A stretch of DNA of 64,000 bases, taken from NCBI RefSeq assembly GCF_006345805.1, contig NC_043022.1, positions 3,472,001 to 3,536,000 on the forward strand, read 5' to 3'. Below, in pieces: positions 6,325 to 64,000 of this stretch. The stretch comes from Octopus sinensis (Eukaryota). A model generated the notes under the pieces. The model was not told where the DNA came from. It ran no database searches and worked only from the letters and a program-made list of their open reading frames with translations. Positions within the stretch are counted from its first letter, which is position 1; every line of letters begins with the position of its first letter. A program made the translations under genes and the position numbers.

Positions 6325-7480
6325 TGTGTGAATGTGAGTATGTTTGTTAGACTATGCTCGTGTGCATGTGTGTGAGTGTATGAACGCTGCAGAGAGAGAG
6401 AGAGAAGGAATGTTTGTGTATGTGTTTGAGACAGAAAGAAAACGTGTGTGTGTGTGTATGTGTGAGAGAGCATGTATGTGTGTGTGAGAGAGCGTGTATG
6501 TGTGTGTGAGAGAGCGTGTATGTATGTGTGAGAGAGCGTGTATGTGTGTGTGAGAGAGCGTGTATGTATGTGTGTGAGAGCGTGTATGTATGTGTGTGAG
6601 AGCGTGTATGTATGTGTGAGAGAGCGTGTATGTACGTGTGAGAGAGCGTGTATGTATGTGTGAGAGAGCGTGTATGTATGTGTGTGAGAGAGAAAGGTAG
6701 AGAGAGTGTATGTATGTGTGAGAGTGTATGTATGTGTGTGAGAGAGTGTATGTGTGTGAGAGAGTGTATGTGTGAGAGTGCATGTATGTGTGTGAGAGAA
6801 TGTATGTATGTGTGAGAGAGTGTATGTATGTGTGTGAGAGTGTATGTATGTGTGAGAGAGAGTGTATGTATGTGTGTGTGAGAGAGAGAGAAAGTGTGTA
6901 TGTATGTGTATGAGAGAGTGTATGTATGTGTGTGAGAGAGTGTATGTATGTGTGAGAGAGTGTATGTATGTGTGAGAGAGAGTGTATGTATGTGTGTGAG
7001 AGAGTGTATGTATGTGTGAGAGAGAGTGTATGTATGTGTGAGAGAATGTATATGTGAGAGTGTATGTATGTGTGTGAGAGAGTGTATGTATGTGTGTGAG
7101 AGAGTGTATGTATGTGTGAGAGAGAGTGTATGTATGTGTGAGAGAATGTATGTATATGTGAGAGAGTGTATGTATGTGTGTGAGAGAGTGTATGTATGTG
7201 TGAGAGAGTGCATGTATGTGTGTGTGTGAGAGAGTGTATGTATGTGTGTGAGAGAGTGTATGTATGTGTGTGAGAGAGTGTATGTATGTGTGTGAGAGAG
7301 TGTATGTATGTGTGAGAGAGTGTATGTATGTGTGAGAGAGTGTATGTATGTGTGAGAGAGTGTATGTATGTGTGTGTGAGAGAGTGTATGTATGTGTGTG
7401 TGAGAGAGAGAAAGTGTGTATGTATGTGTGTGAGAGAGAGTGTATGTGTGTGTATAAAAGAGTGTGTGTGAGTGTGTGTA
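6325..7480. repeat. Compound (GAGAGTGTATGTATGTGT)n microsatellite filling almost all of the intron between exons k and l
   Basis: Directly visible; the complement of the 541-1422 motif. Confidence 0.95.
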
Positions 7481-17042: not shown

Positions 17043-17103
17043 ATATCTTGTGAGTAATCAAGATTTTTGCTTAGATGAGGATCAATAACGCCATCGACAA
17101 CAT
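17043..17103 (-). CDS. KSR: KSR exon g (61 nt, phase 1 to 2)
   Basis: Acceptor aattttctatcattttag, donor AT/gtaagt. Translates DVVDGVIDPHLSKNLDYSQD. It supplies the phase change needed between exons f and h, and FPFP/DV matches the KSR FxFP/D junction. It is not visible in the ORF track. Confidence 0.82.
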
Positions 17104-18409
17104 CTAAAATGATAGAAAATTGAAGATCAATAACAATCCAAGTATTGACAGAATGGTCATGCCATTTTTTTTGGGGGGGGGGAGAGAAAACAAAAACAAT
17201 ATTGTTAATAACAACAAAACAAAAACAAAAATTACAAAAAGATATTTCATAGAAACTGAGGTGTTTTAGTTTGGAAATTTCTTTAGCATTTACAATTCCA
17301 GTGTTGATTCTTTTATAGATACCAACCTGCTGGAGAATGTGTCACAAAAACCAGTCTAATTAGGCAATAAATTTTGTTAAACCTCTCTAATCACTGATTA
17401 TTTTTTCCCCAAAATTAATTGAAACATGTAAGCAGTGTTTTAGTTAAAGGATAAAGCTTAACCATTTAGCATTCAGATTACTCTGTCAAATGAAATGCTT
17501 CTTTATTCCAATCTTCCTTTCCGTTAACCCTTTTGCTACCAGTCTAGCTGAAACCGCCTCTGGCTCTCATCATCATCATCATCATTTAGCGTCCGTTTTC
17601 CATGCTAGCATGGGTTGGACGGTTCTACTGGGGTCTGTGAAACCAGAAGGCTGCATCAGGCCCAGTCAGATCTGGCAGTGTTTCTACGGCTGGATGCCCT
17701 TCCTAACGCCAACCACTCCGTGAGTGTAGTGGGTGCTTTTTACGTGCCACCTGCACAGGTGCCAGACAGAGCTGGCAAACGGCCACGAACGGATGGTGTT
17801 TTATGTGCCACCGGCACGGGGGCCAGGCGAGGCTGGCAACGGACACGAACGGAAGGTGCTTTTACGTGCTACCAGCACAGGGCCAGGCGAGGCTGGCAAT
17901 GGACACGAGTGGATGGTGCTTTTACGTGCTCTGTAGTTACAAATGTCTTGTTTTCAGAAGTTCTCAAAATCTTCCATCAAACCTTAGTCACAATTTATGT
18001 TCCTAACACTAGCTTAATGATATCTAATTTATTTTACTAAATTCTTTGCTATATTTAAAATTAATTGAAAAAAAAAAACACAGATCATCTCAAAAGAAAT
18101 ATGGTAATGAAAGGGTTAAACATGCATTGCAAAAACCATTGAAAGTTCTTGGTAATCTCTACCTAACCGGAGTTTGATTCAGCTCTGTTCCAGTTCAAAA
18201 CCCCACAACATGGCTGTTGAGGTTAGAGATTGTACAATCTCTGTAATAGTAGAACAGCTGGGGAAGGGGTACACGATTCCCTTTGGCAGAGGCACTTTTG
18301 GGTCTGCTGTATCAGCTGTATTGGATCAGGGGATTGTAGTGGGATACCCAAGGACTGACCCAAGGAGCTCACACTCTAGCTATGCCAATACTACATAAGA
18401 ACTACATTA

Positions 18410-21380
18410 GGCGGCGAGCTGGCAGAAACGTTAGCATGCTGGGCGAAGTGCTTAGCCGTATTTCGGCTGCCGTTACGTTCTGAGTTCAAATTCCGCCGAG
18501 GTCGACTTTGCCTTTCATCCTTTCTGGGTCGATAAATAAAGTACCAGTTACGCACTGGGGTCGATGTAATCGACTTAATCCCTTTGTCTGTCCTTGTTTG
18601 TCCCCTCTATGTTTAGCCCCTTGTGGGTAGTAAAGAAATAGGTATTTCGTCTGCCGTTACGTTCTGAGCTCAAATTCCGTAGAGGTCGACTTTGCCTTTC
18701 ATCCTTTCATCATCATCATCATCATCATCATTTAACGTCCGCTTTCCATGCTAGCATGGGTTGGACGGTTCAACTGGGGTCTGGGGAGCCCGAAAGCTGC
18801 ACCAGTCCAGTCAGATCTGGCAGTGTTTCTACAGCTGGATGCCCTTCCTAACGCCAACCACTCCGAGAGTGTAGTGGGTGATTTTATGTGCCACCGACAC
18901 AGGTGCCAGACGAGGCTGGCAAACGGCCACGCTTGGATGGTGTTTTTTATGTGCCACCGACACAGGTGCCAGACGAGGCTGGCAGACGGCCACGCTCGGA
19001 TGGTGTTTTTATGTGCCACCGACACAGGTGCCAGATGAGGCTGGCAAACGGCCACGATCGGATGGTGTTTGTTACGTGCCCACAGCACGGAGCTGGTACT
19101 GGCTACGGCCGTGTGCCACGTGCCACCGGCACTGGTACCACAAAGATACAAATTCCATTGATGTTCATCTATTTTGATTTGTTTTGATTTTCACTTGCCT
19201 CAACAGGTCTTCACAAGTGTCACGAGAAGGAAGGTATGCACAGGTGGACTGACTACGTCCCAGGTAGGGGCCACAGGTTATGGCCTGACTAGTCTTGCCG
19301 GGTCTTCGGATGGTGTTTTTATGTGCCACTGACACAGGTGCCAGATGAGGCTGGCGAACGGCCACGATCGGATGGTGTTTGTTACGTGCCCACAGCACGG
19401 AGGCCAGTCGGTGCGGTACTGGCTACGGCCACGTTCGGATGGTTTTCTTGTGTGCCACCGGCACTGGTACCACAAAGATACAATTCCATTAATGTTCATC
19501 TATTTTGATTTGTTTTGATTTGATTTGATTTGATTTGTTTTGATTTCATTTTGATTTGATTTTGATTTTCACTTGCCTCAACAGGCCTTCACAAGTATCA
19601 CAAGGAGGAAGGTATGCACAGGTGGACTGACTACGTCCCAGGTAGGGGCCATGGGTTATGGCCTGACTAGTCTTGCCGGGTCTTCGGATGGTGTGGGGCC
19701 ATGGGTTATGGCCTGACTAGTCTTGCCGGGTCTTCGGATGGTGTTTTTATGTGCCACCGACACAGGTGCTAGATGAGGCTGGCGAACGGCCACGATCGGA
19801 TGGTGTTTGTTATGTGCCCACAGCACGATGGCCAGTGATGCGGTACTGACTACGGCCACGTTCGGATGGATTCTTGTGTGCCACCGGCACTGGTACCACA
19901 AAGATACAAATTCCATTGATGTTCATCTATTTTGATTTGTTTTGATTTTCACTTGTCTCAACAGGTCTTCACAAGTGTCACAAGAAGGAAGGTATGTACA
20001 GGTGGACTGACTACGTCCCAGGTAGGGGCCACGGGTTATGACCTGACTAGTCTTGCCGGGTCTTCGGATGGTGTTTTTATGTGCCACCATGTTCCCACAG
20101 CACGGAGGCCAGTCGATGCGGTACTGGCTACGGCCACGTTCGGATGGTTTTCTTGTGTGCCACAGGCACTGGTACCACAAAGATACAAATTCCATTGATG
20201 TTCATCTATTTTGATTTGTTTTGATTGATTTTCACTTGCCTCAGCAGGTCTTCACAAGTGTCACAAGAAGGAAGGTATGCACAGGTGGATCGACTACGTC
20301 CCAGGTAGGGGCCACGGGATATGGCCTGACTAGTCCTGCCGGGTCCTCTCATGCACAGCACACTTCCATAGGACTCGGTCTTCAGTCATTTCCTTGGTGA
20401 GACCTAAAGTTCGAAGGTCGTGCTTCACCACCTTGTCCCAGGTTTTCCTGGGTCTACCTCTTCCACAGGTTCCCTCAACTGCTAGGGTGTAGCACTTTTG
20501 CACACAACTATCTTCAGCCATTCTCGTCACATGACCATACCAGCGCAGCCGTCTCTCTTGCACACCACAACTGACACTTCTTAGGTTCAACTTTTCTCTC
20601 AAAGTACTTACACTCTGACGATTATGAACACTGACATTACACATCCATCGGAGCATACTGGCTTCATTTCTTGCGAGCTTACGCATATCCTCAGCAGTCA
20701 CGGCCCATGTTTCACTACCATGTAGCATGGCTGTACGTACACACGCATCATATAGTCTGCCTTTACTCTTAGCGAGAGGCCTTTTGTCACCAGCAGGGTA
20801 AGAGCTCTCTAAACTTTGCCCAGGCTATTCTTACTCTAGCAGTTACACTTTCAGCACACCCACCCCCGCCACTGACTTGGTCTCCTAGGTAGCGGAAGCT
20901 ATCAACTACTTCTAGTTTGTCTCCCTGGAACGTGGTAGAAGTTGGTCTCTGCACATTTCCAGTGTTTATTGCTCCTGAGCATCTGCCACAGACAAAAACT
21001 ATTTTCTTAGTTAGCCTTCCTTTGACATTGCTGCACCTCTTATGTGTCCATAGCTTACACTTGGTGCACCTTATAGAGTTTCTACCTACACCTTTTTTAC
21101 AGATCGAGCAGGGCCATCTACCTGAAGTCGTTTGTGATTGGTCCACCTTCCTACTTATTAGGACTTTGGTTTTGGCTAGGTCCACCTTCCTACTTATTAG
21201 GACTTTGGTTTTGGCTAGGTCCATCTTCCTACTTATTAGGACTTTGGTTTTGGCTAGGTTGATTTCTGGGTCGATAAATAAAGTACCAGTTACGCACTGG
21301 GGTCGATGTAATCGACTTAATCCCTTTGTCTGCCCTTGTTTGTCCCCTCTATGTTTAGCCCCTTGTGGGCAATAAAGAAA
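18410..21380 (+). mobile_element. Second SINE family (ggcggcgagctggcagaa head), partially dimeric, split by the LINE, with a 16-bp TSD
   Basis: aatactacataagaac at 18387-18402 and 21383-21398; the SINE sequence resumes exactly after the LINE. Confidence 0.88.
18709..21262 (-). mobile_element. 5'-truncated RTE/RTEX-like LINE with an embedded PHD-like Cys/His finger and an expanded repetitive 3' UTR, inserted inside a SINE
   Basis: ORF 20787: KTKVL..WPCSICKKGVGRNSIRCTKCKLWTHKRCS..FVCGRC..GDKLEVVDSFRYLG. ORF 20330: MLHGSETWAV..RRLRWYGHV..GRGRPRKTW. (CAT)n tail at 18709; tttc on both sides. Confidence 0.9.
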
Positions 21381-22144: not shown

Positions 22145-25100
22145 TAATAATAATAATAGTGAGCATAGTTAATTTACTTGGTATGCTTGGTGTGTACTTA
22201 AGTCATTGACCCCTGGGGGAATCAAAAGTGAAATCGCACTTGGCGGGAGCTGAACAAAGAGCACAAATTAAAACACTGCAAGACATTTTACTTGTACACC
22301 ACTGATTTTTGTGACCAAAATTACCTTTTAAAACAACAATAATAACAGGTAATTGTACCCAAAATGAAGCACACAACAATGTTGCTAAAAATATAAAGTA
22401 TCAGTGCAAAAAAAAAAAAAACCAACAAAATAAAAAAACAACCCAAATTCCTCAAACAGCATACAGCACACCAATAAGAAAAGTTTATATTAAAAAAAAA
22501 AAGAAATAAAAAATCCCATTTGAAATAACATGAAAAACTGGAAAATTTGAAAATGAAAAAAAAAAAAAAAAAATTAAACCCTTTAGCAGTTATAGCACCA
22601 AAAATGTGGTGAAATGTGTTTTGATGTAGACCAGTGGTTCTTAACTGGGACCTATATAAGTTTTTTTTTTTTTGGGGGGGGGGGGGTCCACACAAGCAAA
22701 ATAGTAAATTAGGGACACACAGTAGTAGGGTCCCTGAAAAGTTTTTGGCAAGAAACAACCAAGTTTCTTTCTTCTTTTACAACTTTCTGGTTACTGAAAC
22801 CTGTTCGCTCAGAGAGTTTTTTTTATTGCAAGCCTACACAAGTAAATGGGGGGCGGGGAGGCAAAATAGGGATTTTGAAAGAAGTATTTAGAAAACTACT
22901 CGGTTGGCAAGAAAGTAATTTTGGTTTTTTAGTGTGAAATAAAGTAATTTTTTTTTTTTTTTTTACATACAAAGTGTTAGGAAAGGCATCCAGCTTGACA
23001 ACCGATGCTGGTGTGTTTACGTCCCCGTTGCTTAGCGGTTCGACAAAAGAGACTGGTAGAATAAGTACTGGGCTTACAAAGAATAAGTCCCGGGGTCGAT
23101 TTGCTCGACTAAAGGCGGTGCTCCAGCATGGCCGCAGTCAAATGACTGAAACAAGTAAAATATAAAAGAAAGATGTGTGTCCTGTTAAGCAATCAACACC
23201 ATAAATTTCCCATATCTCTGAGTGAGGCTCAGCAGCTTTCTTGCCTTTACGGATATAAAAAAGCAAAATATGGTGAAAATGTTCGTTTTTGCACTCCATG
23301 TTAAAACTGACACTGAACTAACAGCTGTAAATAAAATTGTGCAATTTGCTTCTTAAGTAAGCTAAAAGTAATGGCTATCAAATGTCACAAGGAAAAAAAT
23401 CATAACATTGACAAAAGACATTTTAAAAAATTGCGGCTTCCGTGCCGGTGGCACACATAAAAAAGCACCATCCGAACGTGGCCGATGCCAGCGCCACCTC
23501 GACTGGCTTCTGTGCCGGTGGCACACATAAAAAGCACCATCCGAACGTGGCCGATGCCAGTGCTGCCTTGGCTAGCTTCCGTGCCGGTGGCACGTTAAAA
23601 GCACCAACTGATCATGGCCGATGCCAGACTCCCCTGGCACCTGTGCAGGTGACACGTAAAAAGCACCCACTACACTCTCGGAGTGGTTGGCATTAGGAAG
23701 GGCATCCAGCTGTAGAAACTCTGCCAGATCAGACTGGAGCCTGGTGCAGCCCCTGGCTTCCCAGACCCCGGTCGAACCATCCAACCAGTGCTAGCGCAGA
23801 AAACGGACATTAAACGATGATGATGATGATGATTTGCGAAAAATGAAATTACTTTCTTGCCAACCCAACAGCTTTTAAACATCAAATGGCTATGGAGGTC
23901 TACTAGAATAAAATAGTAATTAAAGGGGTCTGCAGGTAAAAGAGGGTCAAGGACCACTGCTTTAGATATATTTATTGCAAGAAACAACTAGGTTTCTCTC
24001 CCTAATTCTTTACATAGTTTAACACGTTTCTGGCCCCTGAATCATGTTCTCTCAGAGGGTCCAATTGCAAACCCACACAAGTGAATGAGTGAAAAGCTAA
24101 ATAGGGATTTTGAAAGAAGTATCTGTAAAAATAGTTTTATTCCACCAGAATAAAATAGTAATTAGAGGGGTCCATAAGTAAAAAGTGCTTGGGAACCACT
24201 AATTGGTTGAATGAAGATACTAACGGGTAAAAAAAAAAAAAGGATGAAGAACAAAAAAAGAGGTGTGGATGCATGTGTTAAATGGTGATGTTCTCTGCTG
24301 TTGCTATTAAAGGTAACAGAAAACTTAGGTAACCAGGTGTAACTGGTGTATTTTAGGAAATGGGTTGGATACTAACCACAACCTGGAAAATTGAATCAAA
24401 ACAAACCAATATTAACCCAGGGTGCAAATTCCTCATCCCTCCCCCTCTCTGCACACTCCAATTGATGTTATTTCTTTCATACGGCGCCGAGTTCTTGAAA
24501 AGCCAAACCCAGAGACTTTCCCCAGTTTTGACCTGCTTCATAGAAGTCCTAAAAGTTAAAAATCATGGCCACCACTGGGAACTAATGTTGTGTGTAATAA
24601 GTACCCCCTCCAGAAATGTCGATCCTCAATGACCTTTCTAGATATTGCCACAATGTGGCAACGGTAGGGGACACAAAGTTTTTTGTGTGTATAGTAGCAA
24701 GTGGATGCAGTGGAGCGGAAGGATGGGTGGGGGGTGTCCAGTGGATTGAACAAGTTTGAGAGAAAGACACTTGGTTGTTACACAAAGCTTTAGTTCTAAA
24801 TTAGTAACGAGTTATGGATTAATTAATTAATGGCAAGGGTGCAGGCATGGCTGTGCCATAGGAAGTTTGCTTCCCACCTACATGGTTCTGAAATCAGTGC
24901 CACTGCATGGCACCTTGGGCATATATATACATAGGGGTGCAGGAGTGGCTGCATGTTAAGTAGCTTGCTTACCAACCACATGGTTCCAGGTTCAGTCCCA
25001 CTGCGTGGCACCTTGGGAAAGTATCTTCTACTATAGCCCTGGGCTGACCAAAACCTTGTGAGTGGATTTGGTAGATGGAAACTAAAAGAAGCCTATTACG

Positions 25101-27020: not shown

Positions 27021-27160
27021 GAAAAATTGAATGTAGGAGGTTCATATTTTTATCCGTGTGAGTCATGTCGGATATTTAACCACAACCATAAATATCCGAC
27101 ATGACTCACATCTCTTTCTCACATGGATAAAAATATGGATCTCCCACATTCAATTTTCCT
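27021..27160. repeat. Fold-back palindrome (perfect 21-bp inner arms, imperfect outer arms of about 36 bp)
   Basis: tgtgagtcatgtcggatattt (27057-27077) / aaatatccgacatgactcaca (27090-27110), 12-nt loop. Confidence 0.9.
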
Positions 27161-27536
27161 GATATATTCCCTCTCAAATTCATTGTATTATGGTTTGTAC
27201 TTCCTGCACTGAAGAGTACATTGATATATTAAATTTAATTTAATCATGAATTTATATTATCATCATTTTATATATATATATATATATATATATGAAACGT
27301 AGAGTAGATGAAACCATGGCGACTGAAGAAGGGGTTTTTTCTTTGTGTTAATTGTCCTGTACTCTATTTTTTTGTTGTTTAAAAAAAAAGTCCAGTTCCA
27401 TGGGTTTGTGTCTATGTTTTCGTTTCTCATTATGTCCGACGTTTTTTTGGTGTCCTGTACTCATATATGCGTGTATATATACATGTAGAGGTAGGTACGT
27501 ACATATATGTATATATATATGCATATGTTTTATTTA

Positions 27537-27580
<44 letters not shown>

Positions 27581-28070
27581 CATATTTATTAAAGATTGCT
27601 GCTAAAGTAATGTAGAAGGATGTATTAGTATACACAGTACATAGTGGAGAGAGTGAGAGAGGAGAGAGCGTAAGAGAGACAGAGAAGGTGAAGACGACTT
27701 AAAGTAATTAGAGAGAGAGAAAAGTAAAAAGAAAGCTGAAAGTAGGTTTACCCGTTACCAATAATTGCGAATTCACCCAATCGCAAGAATGCGTTCACCC
27801 TAATATGAAGTGTGTGTTCATCCAATAACAAGAGTACATTCACTGATAGCAAGTATGTTCCCCTTATACCAAGTGTGCGTTTGCCCTGATATGAAATACG
27901 TTCACCCAACATCAAGTGTTTTTTTTTTTTTTTACCCACATTTGCAAAAGAGCGAGAGGAAAGAAAAAAAGTTGAAAAGAAAAATTAAAAAACTGCCAAG
28001 TTAAATTTGAACCGGCCGTCATGCCAACCAAATTGCACCCTTAGCATGTGTTGTAGAGTCAACTGATTAC

Positions 28071-28799
28071 CTGAGTTGGTGTATTGCCAATGCGGTACCT
28101 GTTCATTGACACCAGAATATTCCGATGACGACGATGATGACAACGATGGCAGAAGTTTGGACATGGCTACCAGAGGCGACTGCATGGGGCCTTTAGTCTG
28201 CAGGAGATGCGACAATGCAGCCGGGGCCACAGCCGGAATGCCCGTCACTCTTTTCTTTAACTGACCTGAGTGAGATTGGTCGGAGAGCAACAACTTGTCG
28301 GCACAATTACGTAAACCTTGGCTGGCATGGAAGTCTTTGTGGTCCTTGTGTTTGCATGGTTTGTCAGAGGATGTGGAAAAGCATGGAAAACATAAAGTCG
28401 AAATAGATCTACAATGCACACATTCAGCGGAACCTAGGTTCAAACAGGGGTACGTATAGAGGCCAAGCTTTCGTTCATGTTCGTACACATGCTGACAAGC
28501 ACATCTCGATGGTAACGGGATGCTTTCAAGAGGAACACGTTTAAAATGAACATTGTGAAAATTAGATTTCTTTGTGCTGCAAACTGGTGATGAGGATGGT
28601 GAGGCCCGACCAAAGTGATGGAAGGAGCCATGTCTTGAGGGTTTGTTGACGGCACTCAGATTTGGCAGGGCCTTACTACTTAGATGGTTAGCAGGGTGGT
28701 TAGCATTCATGTTTAACGGATAAGCAGACTGACTACAAAAAACATCAAAGAAAGCAGGTTCAGTAGGTGTTGAGCAAGACACGGGATAATGGTCCTCAC
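28071..28799 (-). CDS. KSR: Candidate alternative in-frame extension of KSR exon f (729 nt, 243 codons)
   Basis: The frame stays open past the 28800 donor through repeat-free sequence. A second phase-1 donor, TCAG/gtaatc, sits at 28071/28070; otherwise the frame stops at 27985. Confidence 0.5.
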
Positions 28800-29012
28800 C
28801 TGGGAACGGAAACTGAGATGGTAAGGGCACAACCTTCGGGGAGGCAGCCGGAGAGGGAGAAGTGATGCTGGCAGGGGAAGTGATGGGGAGAGCAGGAGAA
28901 GATGGGGTGGATGAGTTACAAGACGATGTGTTGGAGCCTGAATCCTGGCGTTGGAGTGTAGGAACAGACTTCACCAGCTTTATAATGCTTCGCCGAGTGT
29001 TTTTGGGAGAAC
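28800..29012 (-). CDS. KSR: KSR exon f, short form (213 nt, phase 1 to 1): Ser/Thr-rich CA4 with FxFP ERK-docking motif
   Basis: Acceptor tatttttctag, donor CAG/gtgagg. Translates GSPKNTRRSIIKLVKSVPTLQRQDSGSNTSSCNSSTPSSP...SQFPFP. Confidence 0.9.
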
Positions 29013-29643
29013 CTAGAAAAATAGATATACAGAGGAGTGAGGAAATATTACTTGACATTAGGGGTCAGGAAACAATAGAATGGCATTAAACCCAGATCAA
29101 AAAAACAAAAACAACAACAAATTGGTTTCAGGTTTCTTTCTTTCCTTCTTTTTTTTTTGTTTTTTTTTTTAAAAAGTTTTCTGCCATGAAATTACAACAA
29201 CAAACAGACAGACAACAACGAACTGATTTCTGATACAGAACACGCCATAGAGAAAACCACAAGACAAATATAACAACAACAACAACAACAACAAATTATG
29301 ATTGCGAAATGAAAAACCGTCGAAGACAATTGGGGGGTGGGGCGAGGCGGAGGGAGAAGGGCAAAGGTGAAATATTTAAACAAACAAATTATTTTAACGA
29401 TGTTGTCTGAACTGTAATCCCTGAGTTTTTGGTTAGCTCTTAATATTACATTTCAAAATCACATCTACCGAGAGGAGAAACTAGTGACAAAGTCTTACGT
29501 AGGTCAGCAGTTCTTAACCAAGGTGGCCCGTGCGAGGAAAATAGTGAACTGGGGGAGCCATGGTGGTATTTTAAGGCCCCTATGAAAATGTTTTGCTAAA
29601 CCAGCAAGATTTCTTTCTTTAACACTTAACATAGTTTAACATG

Positions 29644-39233: not shown

Positions 39234-39588
39234 AATATATTGCCAGCGCCACCCCGACTGCCTCCATTGCCAGTGGCACATAAAAAGCACCATCCGATCA
39301 TGTCCATTTGCCAGCCTCACCTGGCCTCCGTGCCGGTGGCACATAAAAAGCACCATCTGATCGTGTCCGTTTGCCAGCCTCCCCTGGCACCTGTGCCAGT
39401 GGCAAGTAAAAAGCACCCACTACACTCATGGAGTGGTTGACGTTACGAAGGGCATCCAGCCGTAGAAGCATTGCCAGATCAGACTGGGCCTGGTGCAGCC
39501 TTTTGGCTTCCCAGACCCCAGTTGAACCATCCAACCCATGCCAGCATGGAAAGCGGACGCTAAACGATGATGATGATGATGATGATGA

Positions 39589-48179: not shown

Positions 48180-48712
48180 TTTACGGATTCCATGGACAGC
48201 GAGGCTCACCAATGGAGAAGTTCTTAAGCAGATCAGGCCGAAAATGTCGCTAGAAGCTAGGATCACCAAGCATAGATTGGTATATTTCGGTCATATTATG
48301 CAGAGAAAATCCCTGGAGAAGGACATCATGCTCGGAATGGTCAGTGGCAAGAGAGGAAGAGGCCGACCAAGAACCCGCTGGCTTGACACCATCAAGAGTG
48401 ATACCGGAATGGACATAGCCAATCTGAAAGAAGCGGCCCAGGATAGAACTGATTGGAGGACTCTGATCCATCGAGTGACTGAGAGTCGACTTTGACTGAG
48501 CGGATAGATATATATATATATACGGAATGGTCAGTGGCAAGAGAGGAAGAGGCCGACCAAGAACCCGCTGGCTTGACACCATCAAGAGTGATACCGGAAT
48601 GGACATAGCCAATCTGAAAGAAGCGGCCCAGGATAGAACTGATTGGAGGACTCTGATCCATCGAGTGACCGAGAGTCGACTTTGACTGAGCGGATAGATA
48701 GATAGATAGAGG
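48180..48712 (+). mobile_element. RTE (BovB-like) LINE 3' fragment with the last 180 bp or so duplicated in tandem
   Basis: RITKHRLVYFGHIMQRKSLEKDIMLGMVSGKRGRGRPRTRWLDTIK; ggaatggtcagtggcaag occurs near 48333 and again near 48524. Confidence 0.88.
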
Positions 48713-49029: not shown

Positions 49030-49680
49030 AAGTTGAGAGAGAGAGGTAGGGGTGTGTGTATGTGTGTGTGTGAATATGTGAGTGAATGTGTGTGTGAGTG
49101 AGCATGTGTGTGTGTGTGTAAGTGAGCGAGTGTGTGTGTATGAGTGAGCGAGTGTGTGTAGAGTGAGCGAGAGTGTGTGTGAATATGTGAGTGAATGTGT
49201 GTGAGTGAGTGTGTGAATGAGCATGTGTGTGTGTATGAATGAGTGTGTGTGTGTGTGAGAGTGAGAATGAGCGTGTGTGTGTGTGAGAGTGAGAATGAGC
49301 GTGTGTGTGTGTGAATGAGCATGTGTGTGTGTGCGCATGTATGAGTGAGTGTGTGAGTGAGCGAATGTGTGTGACTGAGTGAATGTGTGTGTAGAGTGAA
49401 CGAGAGTGTGTGTGAGTGAGCGAATGTAAGTGAGTGAGCAAGTGTGTGTGTGTGTGTGTGTGTGTGAGCGAATGCGTGTGAGTGAGTGAATGTGTGTGAG
49501 AGTGAACAAGTGTGTGTGTGTACGTGTGAGTGAGCAAGTATGTGTGTATGAGTGAGAGAGCGAATGTGAGTGAGTGAATGTGTGTGTGTGAGCAAATATG
49601 TATGTGTGAGCGAGCGAGAGTGTGTGTGTGAGCGAGTGTGAGTGAGTGAGTGAGCGAATGTGTGTGTGCGTAAGTAAGTG
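49030..49680. repeat. (GT/GA)n compound microsatellite
   Basis: Directly visible. Confidence 0.95.
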
Positions 49681-50593: not shown

Positions 50594-51107
50594 CTTAGAA
50601 GTACCTTTTCAAACTCCACCCGTCTAACACCCGTGGACATGTTTACAAAATCAGGAAACAGCACAGCTCCCATGACTTTAGGAAACATTTTTTCACGCTG
50701 AGAGTTGCTGAAGCATGAAACAAACTGCTGGCATCAGTTGTTGGTTGTCAGAGCACTGCATCCTTCAAAACTTCCATGCTTCCTGAGTCCGTTTGTCTAA
50801 CACCCGTGGACATGTTTATAAAGTCAGAAAACAGCACAGCTCCCATGACTTCAGGAAACATTTTTTTACGCTGAGAGTTGCTGAAGCATGGAACAAACTG
50901 CTGGCATCGGTTGTTAGTTGTCGGAGCACTGCATCCTTCAAAACTTCCATGCTTCCTGAGATTCGCCAACACTACACCTGATTTTCTCTCCTCCATACAC
51001 ACACAAGCATGTATCTGACTCGTACACTGTTCGCTTTCCAGACATTTGTATATTACTGCATATACTCTGACAAGTTGTGGTGCACCTGAGCACTGTATAC
51101 AATAATT

Positions 51108-51145: not shown

Positions 51146-51450
51146 AGTAGGTGACTTCAACCTTTGGGAATTAGTTGTCATGGTAACAGACAAAATCAAA
51201 ATACATAAAAATACATAGCTACAAAGTACATACAGGCATTCAATCCCCACCCCATCAGACATGCCTATATCAACCAATCAACATATCATCATTTAACATT
51301 AGTATTCCATACTGGCATAGGTTGGATGGTTTGATAGGAGGAACTAGGTGAGCCAGAAGGCTGCACCTGGCCCCAATTGTCTGTTTTGGCATGGCTTCTA
51401 TGGCCGAACGCCCTATCTAAACCCAACCACATTACAGAGTGTACTGGACT

Positions 51451-52148
51451 GGGTGCTTTTCACGTGGGACCTGCACAAGCACTTTTTATGTGACACCAGC
51501 ACGGGTGTTTTTCACGTGGCACCAGCACGGGTGTTTTTCACGTGGCACCAGCACGGGTGTTTTTCATGTGGCACCAGCATGGGTGCTTTTTATGTGACAC
51601 CAGCATGGGTGTTTTTCACGTGGCACCAGCACGAGTGCTTTTCATGTGGCACCAGCATGGGTGTTTTTCATGTGGCACCAGCATGGGTGCTTTTTATGGC
51701 ACCAGCATGGGTGCTTTTTATGACACCAGCATGGGTGTTTTTCACGTGGCACCAGCACGGGTGCTTTTTATGTGACACCAGGATGGGTGTTTTTCACGTG
51801 GCACCAGGATGGGTGTTTTTCACGTGGCACCAGGATGGGTGTTTTTCACGTGGCACCAGCATGGGTGCCTTTCACGTGACACCAGCATGGGTGCATTTTA
51901 TGTGACACCAGCATGGGTGTTTTTCACGTGGCACCAGGATGGGTGCTTTTTATGTGACACCAGCATGGGTGTTTATCACGTGACACCAGCACGAGTGCTT
52001 TTTATGTGACACCAGCATGGGTGCCTTTCACGTGACACCAGCATGGGTGCATTTTATGTGACACCAGCATGGGTGTTTTTCACGTGGCACCAGCACGAGT
52101 GCTTTTTATGTGACACCAGCATGGGCGCTTTTTACGTGGCACCAGCAT
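51451..52148. repeat. Minisatellite, about 26-bp unit (gcaccagcatgggtgtttttcacgtg), roughly 27 copies
   Basis: Directly visible; grows out of a LINE-3'-UTR-like repeat starting near 51290. Confidence 0.92.
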
Positions 52149-52692: not shown

Positions 52693-54704
52693 TTATATAT
52701 GATAGGCTTCTTTCAGTTTCCGTCTACCAAATCCACTCACAAGACTTTGGTCGGCCCGGGGCTATAGTAGAAGACACTTGCCCAAGATGTCACGCAGTGG
52801 GACTGAACCCGGAACCATGTGGTTGGTTAGCAAGCTACTTACCACACAGCCACTCCTGCACCTAATTATGGATTATCTTACTTTGAGATTTTGATGATGT
52901 GATTTTTTTATTTTTAGAATGACATTGTAGGGTAGGTGTGAGAGGCTGGATCTGACCAGTTCGAGCATAAAATGCATAGAATGTTTGAACTGGTTTAAAG
53001 TGGCGAGCTGGCAGAATCGTTAGCACACTGGACGAAATACGGTATTTCGCCTCTCTTTACATTCTGAGTTCAAATTCCACCGAGGTTGACTTTGCCTTTT
53101 ATCCTTATCGGGGTCGATAAATTAAGTACCTGTTGCTTACTGGGGTCGATCTAATCAACTGCCCCCGCCCCCAAAATTTCGGGCTGGTTATGGCCAGTTT
53201 AAAAGCATTCGGATTATTCTTTCCAATGCTGTGCTTACTTATTCAGATTGTTAATCATGTAATAATATTTTAGCCTTCTTATAGAAAAATCAGCAGAACT
53301 AATGAGCATTGTAATGCTTATATAACGTATATGAGTGGCTGTGTGGTAAGTAGCTTGCTTACCGACCACATGGTTCAGGGTTCAGCCCCACTACGTGGCA
53401 CCTTGGGCAAGTGTCTTCTACTATAGTCTCGGGCCGACCAAAGCCTTGTGAGTGGATTTGGTAGACGGAAACTGAAAGAAGCCCGTCGTATATATGTATG
53501 TATGTGTTTGTCCCCCCAACATTGCTTGACAACCAATGCTGATGGTTCAGGGTTCAGCCCCACTACGTGGCACCTTAGGCAAGTGTCTTCTACTATAGTC
53601 TCGGGCCAACCAAAGCCTTGTGAGTGGATTAGGTAGACGGAAACTGAAAGAAGCCCGTCGTATATATGTATATGTATGTATATGTGTGTATGTTTGTGTG
53701 TCTGTGTTTGTCCCCCCAACATCGCTTGACAACCGATGTTGGTGTGCTTACGTCCCCGTAACTTAGCGGTTCGGCGAAAGAGACCGATAGAATAAGTACT
53801 AGGCTTACAAAAGAATGTCCTGTGGTCGATTTGCTCGACTAAAGGTGGTGCTCCAGCATGGCCACAGTCAAATGACTGAAACAAGTAAAGAGGAATAGTA
53901 CATACATAAGGTGTATATAGTCAATGCAAGATTATATATCCAGGTAGTTTGAACTTGTTATTATCTACGAAAAGCAACGGTTTTCAAAGATAATATTTTA
54001 CAAGTTGTACAAACATCATCATCATCATCATCATCACCATTTAGCGTCCATTCTCCATGCTAGCATGGGTTGGACGGTTCGACCGTGGTCTGTGAAGCCG
54101 GAAGGCTGCACCAGGCCCAGTCTGATCTGGCAGTGTTTCTATGGCTGGATGCCCTTCCTAACGCCAACCACTCCATGAGTGTAGTGGGTGCTTTTTACGT
54201 GCCACCCGCACAGGTGCCAGACGGAGCTAGCAAACGGCCACGAACGGATGGTGCTTTTACGTGCCACCGGCATGGGGGCCAGGCGAGGCTGGCAGCGGAC
54301 ATGAACGGATGGTGCTTTTAGGTCCCACTGGCACGGAGGCCAGACGGGGCGGCGCCGGCAACGACCACGATCGGATGGTTCGCTTAACCACATCTGTATA
54401 GCACTTCACATATGTAATATGAAGATAGATTATAGAGAGAGAGAATGTGTATGTGTGACCCCAAGATCAGCAAGTATGAGCGCTGCTAGAGCTGGTTCTA
54501 GGATCAGCCGATTATACATGGCCCAAGAGGCAATGAGTGTATACATGTCCACATGATCAGCATTACGTGTGGCCCCAGAGCTGGTTTTATGATCAGGAAA
54601 TACACATGGCAACAAGTGCGCGTGTGTGTGTGTGTGTACACATCTGAAGTTAGCAGTTTCTTTTCAAGCATTTGTAAGGTAGCTGTGTGAAAAAGTGCCA
54701 CACC

Positions 54705-63085: not shown

Positions 63086-64000
63086 ATGCCAGTGCCACCT
63101 GACTGGCTCTTGTGCCAGTGGCACGTAAAAAGCACCATTCGAGTGTGGTTGATGCCAGTGCCACCTGACTGGCTCTCGTACCGGTGGCATGTAAAAAGCA
63201 CTATTTGAGTGTGGTTGATGTCAGTGCCACCTGACCGGCTCTCGTAACAATGGCATGTAAAAAGCATCATTCGAGTGTGGTTGATGCCAGTGCCACCTGA
63301 CTGGCTCTGTGCCAGTGGCATGTAAAAAGCACCATTTGAGTGTGGTTGATGCCAGTGCTGCCATGACTGGCTCTTGTGCCAGTGGCATGTAAAAAGCACC
63401 ATTCGAGTGTGGTTGATGCCAGTGCCACCTGACTGGCTCTCGTGCCAATGGCATGTAAAAAGCATCATTCGAGTGTGGTTGATGCCAGTGCCACCTGACT
63501 GGCTCTCGTGCCAGTGGCATGTAAAAAGCACCATTCGAGTGTGGTTGATGCCAGTGCCACCTGACTGGCTCTCGTGCCAATGGCATGTAAAAAGCATCAT
63601 TCGAGTGTGGTTGATGCCAGTGCCACCTGACTGGCTCTCGTGCCAATGGCATGTAAAAAGCATCATTCGAGTGTGGTTGATGCCAGTGCCACCTGACTGG
63701 CTCTCGTGCCAATGGCATGTAAAAAGCATCATTCGAGTGTGGTTGATGCCAGTGCCACCTGACTGGCTCTCGTGCCAATGGCATGTAAAAAGCATCATTC
63801 GAGTGTGGTTGATGCCAGTGCCACCTGACTGGCTCTCGTGCCAATGGCATGTAAAAAGCATCATTCGAGTGTGGTTGATGCCAGTGCCACCTGACTGGCT
63901 CTTGTGCCAGTGGCATGTAAAAAGCATCATTCGAGTGTGGTTGATGCCAGTGCCACCTGACTGGCTCTTGTGCCAGTGGCATGTAAAAAGCACCATTTGA
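63086..64000. repeat. Minisatellite, 66-bp unit, about 14 copies, truncated by the window end
   Basis: The unit gccagtgccacctgactggctctcgtgccaatggcatgtaaaaagcatcattcgagtgtggttgat resembles the gtgccggtggcacgtaaaaagcacc LINE 3' UTR module. Confidence 0.95.

Follow-up and report, generated by a model that had tools for sequence, protein, structure and literature searches.

A predicted cephalopod-specific coding extension of the CA4 exon in an octopus KSR gene, bounded by two conserved splice donors

The KSR locus and its open frame

KSR proteins are scaffolds of the Raf-MEK-ERK cascade that set the gain and the location of Ras-ERK signalling. A KSR gene lies on the minus strand of the DNA analyzed in this study, a stretch of 64,000 nt from Octopus sinensis (NC_043022.1, positions 3,472,001-3,536,000), which is referred to as the window. 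In this gene the reading frame of the CA4 exon continues past the splice donor that follows the ERK-docking FxFP motif (donor 1) and runs through a further 243 codons to a second donor (donor 2). Comparisons with other cephalopods and molluscs indicate that this segment is a coding extension of the CA4 exon which is specific to cephalopods and has been kept in at least two of their lineages.

The exons of the gene were mapped in order by tblastn with mollusc KSR proteins (Table 1). The core of the CA4 exon aligns with the CA4 region of named gastropod and chiton KSRs (P0004, P0006, and P0007). It codes for ...KSVPTLQRQDSGSNTSSCNSSTPSSPALPITSPASITSPSPAASPKVVPLPSQFPFP, up to CCCAG/GTGAGG, and contains DSGSNTSSCNSSTPSSPA followed by SQFPFP (29012-28800). 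The families PF07714/PF00069 carried by the gene model of Octopus bimaculoides identify a Raf-like kinase or pseudokinase domain (CA5). Three features by which a KSR is recognized, a C1 domain (CA3), a Ser/Thr-rich CA4 region with FxFP, and a C-terminal kinase-like domain, are found at this locus.

The open reading frame on the minus strand extends from 29058 to 27985 and comprises 357 amino acids counted from the first ATG, or 359 codons from stop to stop. Beyond donor 2 it continues for another 28 codons before it ends at 27985. Our analysis was a follow-up of a sequence-only reading of the window, which had described about 270 open codons beyond a CAG/gtgagg donor and had quoted from them the peptides RCACQHVYEH, CLNLGSAECVHCRSISTLCFPCF, and CKHKDHKDFH, an RHGSF site and a poly-Ser run (SSSSSS). 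All of these were recovered. A repeat-free frame of this length had been held unlikely to arise by chance, and this was borne out as well. With a stop trinucleotide frequency of 4.7% on the minus strand, the chance of 272 open codons is about 2e-6 per start, across about 6200 frames. The extension is free of stops in just one of the six frames, the remaining frames having 9-18 stops, and its region contains neither a tandem repeat nor a sequence with a second copy within the window. In a window-wide comparison, 27985-29064 was the sole long frame in unique sequence. All other open frames of comparable length are located inside tandem repeats and are open in several frames.

Donor scores were derived from a generic metazoan donor matrix. 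Donor 1 is the top-scoring donor-like site of the region, and the score of donor 2 falls inside the range of the remaining donors of the gene (6.9-10 bits). The next KSR exon, exon g, opens with AT GTT GTC, and both donors are in frame with it. Since exon g supplies AT after a phase-1 donor, either junction makes G/AT, i.e. Asp, and the product would read FPFP-D-VVDG or QYTNS-D-VVDG. The sequence-only reading had proposed that splicing from 28071 inserts 243 amino acids between CA4 and the kinase domain, which agrees with the AT of exon g and with the junction in the public gene model described below. A third phase-1 GT at 28266 on the minus strand (CAG/GTCAGT, 8.65 bits), corresponding to an insert of 178 codons, was rejected as a conserved donor. 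It reads CGG/GT in the closely related octopus considered below, and the more distant cephalopod has no GT at this place.

Conservation among cephalopods and other molluscs

A search of 5.8 billion proteins yielded three cephalopod relatives. P0001 stems from a closely related octopus and is encoded on the Logan contig L002 (1761 nt; run SRR11869384), P0002 is the predicted model from O. bimaculoides, and P0003 stems from a much more distant cephalopod and is encoded on the ENA contig L001 (25.6 kb; ERZ21867824). In a cluster look-up every cephalopod match was a singleton, and when P0003, the distant orthologue, was used as query, no further relatives were obtained.

Between the window and L002, the CA4 core exon is 99.5% identical and the 729-nt extension 95.1%, both without indels. 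Identity is 79% with nine indel runs in the upstream intron, 92% without indels in the 87-nt tail that follows donor 2, and 84% with four indel runs in the intron beyond this tail. The extension differs significantly from the introns in this comparison (Fisher p = 6e-15). Its 36 differences are distributed 10/5/21 over the three codon positions (chi-square p = 0.004), and the ratio of nonsynonymous to synonymous divergence (dN/dS) is 0.21 by the NG86 method or 0.35 by maximum likelihood (ML).

In L001, the DNA of the CA4 exon is 81% identical, the introns are not alignable, and weak C1-like matches are found upstream in collinear order. The CA4 acceptor is in place. The extension measures 693 nt (231 codons) and has no stop in frame as compared to 5-20 stops in the other frames. 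At the protein level it is 48% identical to the window, with a dN/dS of 0.16-0.23 at saturated dS. In the best 46 aligned codons, which represent the most conserved core, the differences are distributed 10/3/27 by codon position. This distribution shows that it is the protein, rather than the DNA, that is constrained. Neither L002 nor L001 has a frameshift or a stop in the orthologous extension. By these alignments, purifying selection acts on the extension both in the comparison with a close cephalopod and in that with a distant one.

The two donors were also tested as an alternative 5' splice site. They have the same phase, share one acceptor, and are conserved in L002 and L001. The 9-mer of donor 1 is unchanged in both contigs (CCCAG/GTGAGG in L001), including three synonymous positions. 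Donor 2 is the same in L002, and L001 has ACAG/GTAACC at the homologous place and in phase 1.

In other molluscs the FxFP motif is followed across the donor 1 junction directly by Asp or Glu (FQFPDV in P0004, FNFPDV in P0006, and FKFPEI in P0007). Genomic read-through in a non-cephalopod (P0005) meets a stop after about 38 unrelated codons. The direct joining of FxFP to Asp or Glu suggests that donor 1 marks the ancestral junction and that the extension is an intron turned exon. A profile built from four cephalopod sequences and run without word filter against 1.84 billion representatives found no non-cephalopod relative. It returned two cephalopod representatives and one spurious match, the tandem-repeat protein P0008. 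The sequence-only reading had suggested a lineage-specific long form of KSR, and purifying selection in both comparisons together with the lack of relatives outside the cephalopods in these searches supports such a coding form. A literature search on KSR in octopus or cephalopods turned up no relevant paper.

The public model from O. bimaculoides (P0002, UniRef100_A0A0L8HAC8) shares 97% identity with the window. Its first residue is a Met within the extension (MNANHPANH...), and it reads ...QVPHWQYTNS/DVVDGVIDPH... on into the kinase domain, joined exactly at the donor 2 junction. Being a predicted model, it was not counted as transcript evidence. The segment had been described as hidden, which is overstated, as the O. 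bimaculoides annotation of 2015 already placed it in a UniProt model. Because this model begins inside the insert, current gene models of the KSR locus are incomplete.

Table 1. Features of the KSR gene in the window (a slash marks the exon-intron boundary; aa, amino acid position in the extension)
Feature	Position	Strand	Remarks
C1 exon (CA3, atypical C1)	~36259-36161	-	weak, collinear tblastn matches, E 0.001-0.005
KSR CA4 exon core, 213 nt	28800..29012	-	Ser/Thr/Pro-rich; acceptor ttttctAG/GT at 29012
FPFP, ERK-docking FxFP motif	28812-28801	-	C-terminal end of CA4 exon core
Donor 1, CAG/GTGAGG (CCCAG/GTGAGG), phase 1	28794..28802, last exon base 28800	-	11.4 bits
Predicted coding extension, 729 nt (243 codons; codons begin at 28800)	28071..28799	-	Ser/Pro/His-rich
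RHGS, basophilic R-x-x-S, aa 56-59	28624..28635	-	RHGSL at homologous L001 position
Most conserved core, aa 104-151 (48 residues)	28348..28491	-	36/46 aligned residues identical to L001
RSIS, R-S-x-S inside core, aa 131-134	28399..28410	-	RSIS in L002, RSVS in L001
Donor 2, CAG/GTAATC (TCAG/GTAATC), phase 1	28065..28073, last exon base 28071	-	7.0 bits
Read-through tail, 28 codons + TAA (27987-27985)	27985..28070	-	best read as intron
Intronic 14-mer TTTGGTTGGCATGA	28019..28032	-	39 nt downstream of donor 2; contains GCAUG
Exon g (next KSR exon)	17043..17104	-	acceptor ttttAG/ATGTTGTC; codes for (D)VVDGVIDPHLSKNLDYSQDI
Linker and kinase exons	9821-347, last 487-347 at window end	-	tblastn

Several repeat families were observed elsewhere in the window. 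The tandem-repeat frames at 563-1425, 6450-7453, 49052-49668, and 63086-63997 reach up to 453 codons and are open in 2-3 frames. They are built of units of 20-66 nt (CTCTCTCAGACATACATACA, GTGTATGTATGTGTGAGAGAGA, and others) and are not genes; the array at 6450-7453 is located in the intron separating two KSR kinase exons. A further unit, some 60-69 nt long (GGTGCTTTTACGTGCCACCAGCAC...GGCCAG..GAGGCTGGCA..GG.CAC), forms short arrays in both orientations throughout the KSR introns (17732-17929, 18882-19080, 23435-23627, 39260-39417, 51450-52148, 54187-54350, and 63086-63997) and apparently represents a repeat family of the interspersed or satellite-like type. At 1884-2728 and 50622-50960, a 173-nt unit is arrayed. 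The two consensus sequences look mutually reverse-complementary, as if a single repeat family were present in inverted copies some 48 kb from each other. At 48333-48708 there are two copies of a 190-nt unit, one frame of which reads ...GRGRPRTRWLDTIKSDTGMDIANLKEAAQDRT; we take this to resemble the C-terminal end of ORF2 proteins from retrotransposons.

Conserved elements of the insert and the adjacent intron

Ser makes up 16% of the insert, Pro 9%, and His 7%. Its most conserved core has the consensus HVYxxxRKLGLYTYPxLNLxSxxCVHxRSxSTLCFPCFSxSSxKPCxH. Further conserved stretches are GEDxYP and AxFDxF at the N-terminus, RHGS[FL]xHH, SSPVxSxKKS, and ExxGVxxQxxHxQY at the C-terminus. RHGS and RS[IV]S are the sole matches to R-x-x-S/T in each species, and they are located at homologous positions. 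RSIS resembles a 14-3-3 mode-1 motif minus the Pro at +2. Two other elements, the poly-Ser run and the D-motif-like KKRVTGIPAV, are missing from L001 and were not treated as functional. At 10590-10625 of L001 an acidic DDDDEEDDDD is found where the window has a basic KHKDHKDF after the core, so that the charge is reversed.

A metal-binding module had also been envisaged. Four of the 12 Cys residues (C127, C137, C140, and C149) are kept in L001, along with H129 and H151, and the conserved spacing in the two lineages compared is CxH-x7-CxxC-x8-CxH. The RCAC pair and further Cys residues, including one of a CxxC, are replaced (C100V, C102S, C119Y, and C130R), and the insert matched no Pfam family and no PDB sequence at E <= 1. 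Hence, the Cys/His pattern is conserved in part, and the module is a weak and unproven proposal. AlphaFold2 gave a predicted local distance difference test score (pLDDT) of 33.5 for the insert, with no residue above 50 and no confident fold. The kinase domain of the O. bimaculoides model, which served as control with an alignment of six sequences, likewise stayed below 50. The method is powerless at such depth, and since the control failed as well, nothing on order, disorder or a metal site follows from this prediction.

The tail behind donor 2 differs from the extension in its mode of divergence. In comparison with L002, its dN is 0.078 and its dS 0, the differences being distributed 2/1/2 by codon position. 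The stop is missing from L002, and P0001 continues past this position. The frame in L001 is displaced by a 16-nt indel, and except for a 14-mer the L001 sequence bears no relation to the tail. This 14-mer, TTTGGTTGGCATGA, has the same sequence in the window, in L002 (1369-1382), and in L001 (10891-10904; +23 nt from donor 2), and each of them contains it only once. It is one of only two 14-mers other than low-complexity sequence that are shared by the window and L001 introns of about 10 kb each. GCAUG, which it contains, is the core of the Rbfox-type (U)GCAUG intronic splicing enhancers found downstream of regulated 5' splice sites. By its position and conservation, the block is a candidate intronic splicing enhancer.

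An Rfam scan of the sequence revealed nothing above threshold. Matches to microRNA models with 27-39 bits (gathering thresholds 81-245) at 27459-27530 and 27028-27152 lie on an AT/TA microsatellite and are almost certainly artefacts of composition.

Interpretation and comparison with known KSR forms

The explanation that we favor, and that we regard as probable though far from certain, is a long KSR isoform produced by regulated choice between two competing 5' splice sites. The 5'-end of an ancestral intron, which begins right after FxFP in other molluscs, would have become exon. Use of 28071 rather than 28800 would add 243 residues in frame and leave the remaining protein unchanged. Competition of the donors would give rise to a short isoform of the mollusc type (FPFP-D-VVDG) and to the long one, and the GCAUG block just past the weaker donor 2 may act as a regulatory intronic element. 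In the long form, the 243 residues separate the FxFP dock for ERK from the kinase-like domain that binds MEK, and both remain intact. The insert itself probably is a mostly flexible regulatory linker rich in Ser, Pro, and His. Its core of Cys, His, and aromatic residues, together with RHGS and RS[IV]S, may mediate phosphorylation-dependent control, docking, or contacts with membranes or partners. Docking of the 14-3-3 type, as at Ser297 and Ser392 of KSR1, would be one example, and a dominant-negative form would not be created.

A constitutive exon of 942 nt (213 + 729) always spliced at 28071 is possible, though we consider it clearly less likely. The GGT-GAG at 28799 would then simply code for Gly-Glu, and no short isoform would exist. 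Such an exon accords with purifying selection on the whole extension at a dN/dS of about 0.2 in two comparisons and with the sole public model over the region, which uses donor 2; moreover, G-E-D is conserved as protein, so coding accounts for part of the conservation of donor 1. It leaves unexplained that donor 1 is near-perfect and the stronger of the two (11.4 versus 7.0 bits), that its three synonymous positions are unchanged despite saturated dS, that its junction is used by all other molluscs seen, and that a conserved intronic block lies beside the weaker donor, as is usual where splicing is regulated. Regulated competition is preferred over a constitutive exon because of the strong conserved donor 1, the weaker conserved donor 2, and this block. 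The sequence-only reading had offered instead a kinase-less protein with C1 and FxFP, produced by read-through to the stop at 27985, that could sequester ERK or act in a dominant-negative manner; its transcript would be polyadenylated in the intron. The frame does continue for 28 codons to a stop, AATAAA/ATTAAA hexamers follow at 27590, 27538, and 27534 (400-450 nt downstream), and the tail is better conserved than bulk intron (p = 0.013). In contrast, the tail has no coding signature, its stop is not conserved in L002, its peptide in L001 is unrelated behind the indel, and its conservation is concentrated in a 14-nt DNA block that is kept across different frames. The hexamers lie in an AT-rich microsatellite region and carry no weight. 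The truncated form is therefore unsupported, and we consider it improbable.

It is very improbable that the open frame reflects chance or the noise of a functionless retained intron. The Ser/Pro-rich composition and the lack of an AlphaFold2 fold, which was shared by the control kinase domain, would be compatible with such noise. Against it stand a divergence four-fold below that of the flanking introns with no indel in 729 nt, the excess of third-position differences, and a distant lineage that keeps the frame without a stop and changes its length by a multiple of three. Equally hard to credit is the idea that the segment belongs to another gene nested in KSR, or to a domesticated mobile element, and is in frame with KSR only by luck. 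The start of the O. bimaculoides model at a Met within the segment would fit this idea, but the segment has no counterpart in Pfam or PDB, contains no repeat, and occurs just once in the window. In L001, too, the frame runs on from the CA4 exon and both donors match exon g in phase 1, and the first 30 residues upstream of this Met are likewise conserved (GEDxYP and AxFDxF).

Some observations weigh against the regulated long isoform itself. The comparison draws on four sequences from perhaps two lineages, and the case for dual donor use comes solely from the conservation of the donors. By our rough estimate, the three synonymous sites of donor 1 would be conserved by chance with a probability of about 7%. 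P0002, with its internal-Met start in the extension, could represent an 'initial exon' predicted ab initio. A protein search centred on the junction, with the extension tail, exon g, and the linker as query, gave zero matches; it missed even P0002, which contains its query, and is thus uninformative. In GGCAUGA, a G and not the optimal 5' U of Rbfox sites precedes GCAUG. The strict 14-3-3 mode-1 pattern R-[SFYW]-x-pS/pT-x-P was found in none of the three sequences, RS[IV]STL and RHGS[FL] both being without Pro at +2.

More speculatively, and in our view unlikely, the core could be an undescribed module confined to cephalopods, either a small zinc knuckle or a palmitoylated and phosphorylated switch for membrane or partner binding, included by splicing under control of the conserved GCAUG element, perhaps in neurons. 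If true, cephalopods would obtain a second, differently regulated Ras-ERK scaffold out of one gene. The insert provides a concrete and testable case of how a core scaffold of signalling may have been altered in cephalopods through the change of an intron into an exon. It is large, by our comparisons under selection, and placed right between the site that docks ERK and the kinase domain that binds MEK. This is a lineage-restricted change to a well-known scaffold, which is of specialist interest and challenges no general principle.

The short KSR of other molluscs, as seen in models from Liolophura sinensis, Elysia marginata, and Batillaria attramentaria, shares with the octopus gene the C1 exon, the Ser/Thr-rich CA4 with DSGSNTSSCNSSTPSSPA and FxFP, the junction after FxFP with Asp next, the DSDKTL linker, and the kinase-like domain. 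In contrast, the cephalopod gene keeps 231-243 more open codons and a second conserved donor, and its insert is unmatched by any other KSR in the library of 1.84 billion proteins. The intronic element resembles Rbfox-type enhancers in that GCAUG is part of a block of deep conservation that follows the weaker donor at a distance of 23-39 nt; it differs in that this block, at 14 nt, is longer than an Rbfox site.

KSR1 and KSR2 are regulated via 14-3-3 sites, Ser297 and Ser392 in KSR1 and Ser310 and Ser469 in KSR2, which are phosphorylated by C-TAK1/MARK3, and their FxFP is located in CA4 (PMC5583734). The insert motifs are likewise basophilic R-x-x-S sites, and in RS[IV]S the residues are spaced R-S-x-S as in mode 1, but both differ from the KSR1 and KSR2 sites in lacking the Pro at +2 and are candidate phosphorylation sites only. 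The orthologue of the Ser392 site presumably is the KSVP upstream in the core CA4 exon, outside the insert, to judge from the mouse sequence.

Isoforms that differ in CA4 length are known. B-KSR1 of mouse brain has a longer CA4 and an isoform of ksr-2 of C. elegans a shorter one, and the altered CA4 of B-KSR1 is linked to neuronal signalling in mouse (summarized in PMC4050188). The octopus gene would resemble both in that alternative splicing alters the length of CA4 between the C1 and kinase domains. The sequences are not related. B-KSR1 also has a truncated C-terminus, whereas that of the octopus protein is unchanged. The octopus insert is also far larger than the insert of B-KSR1 is said to be.

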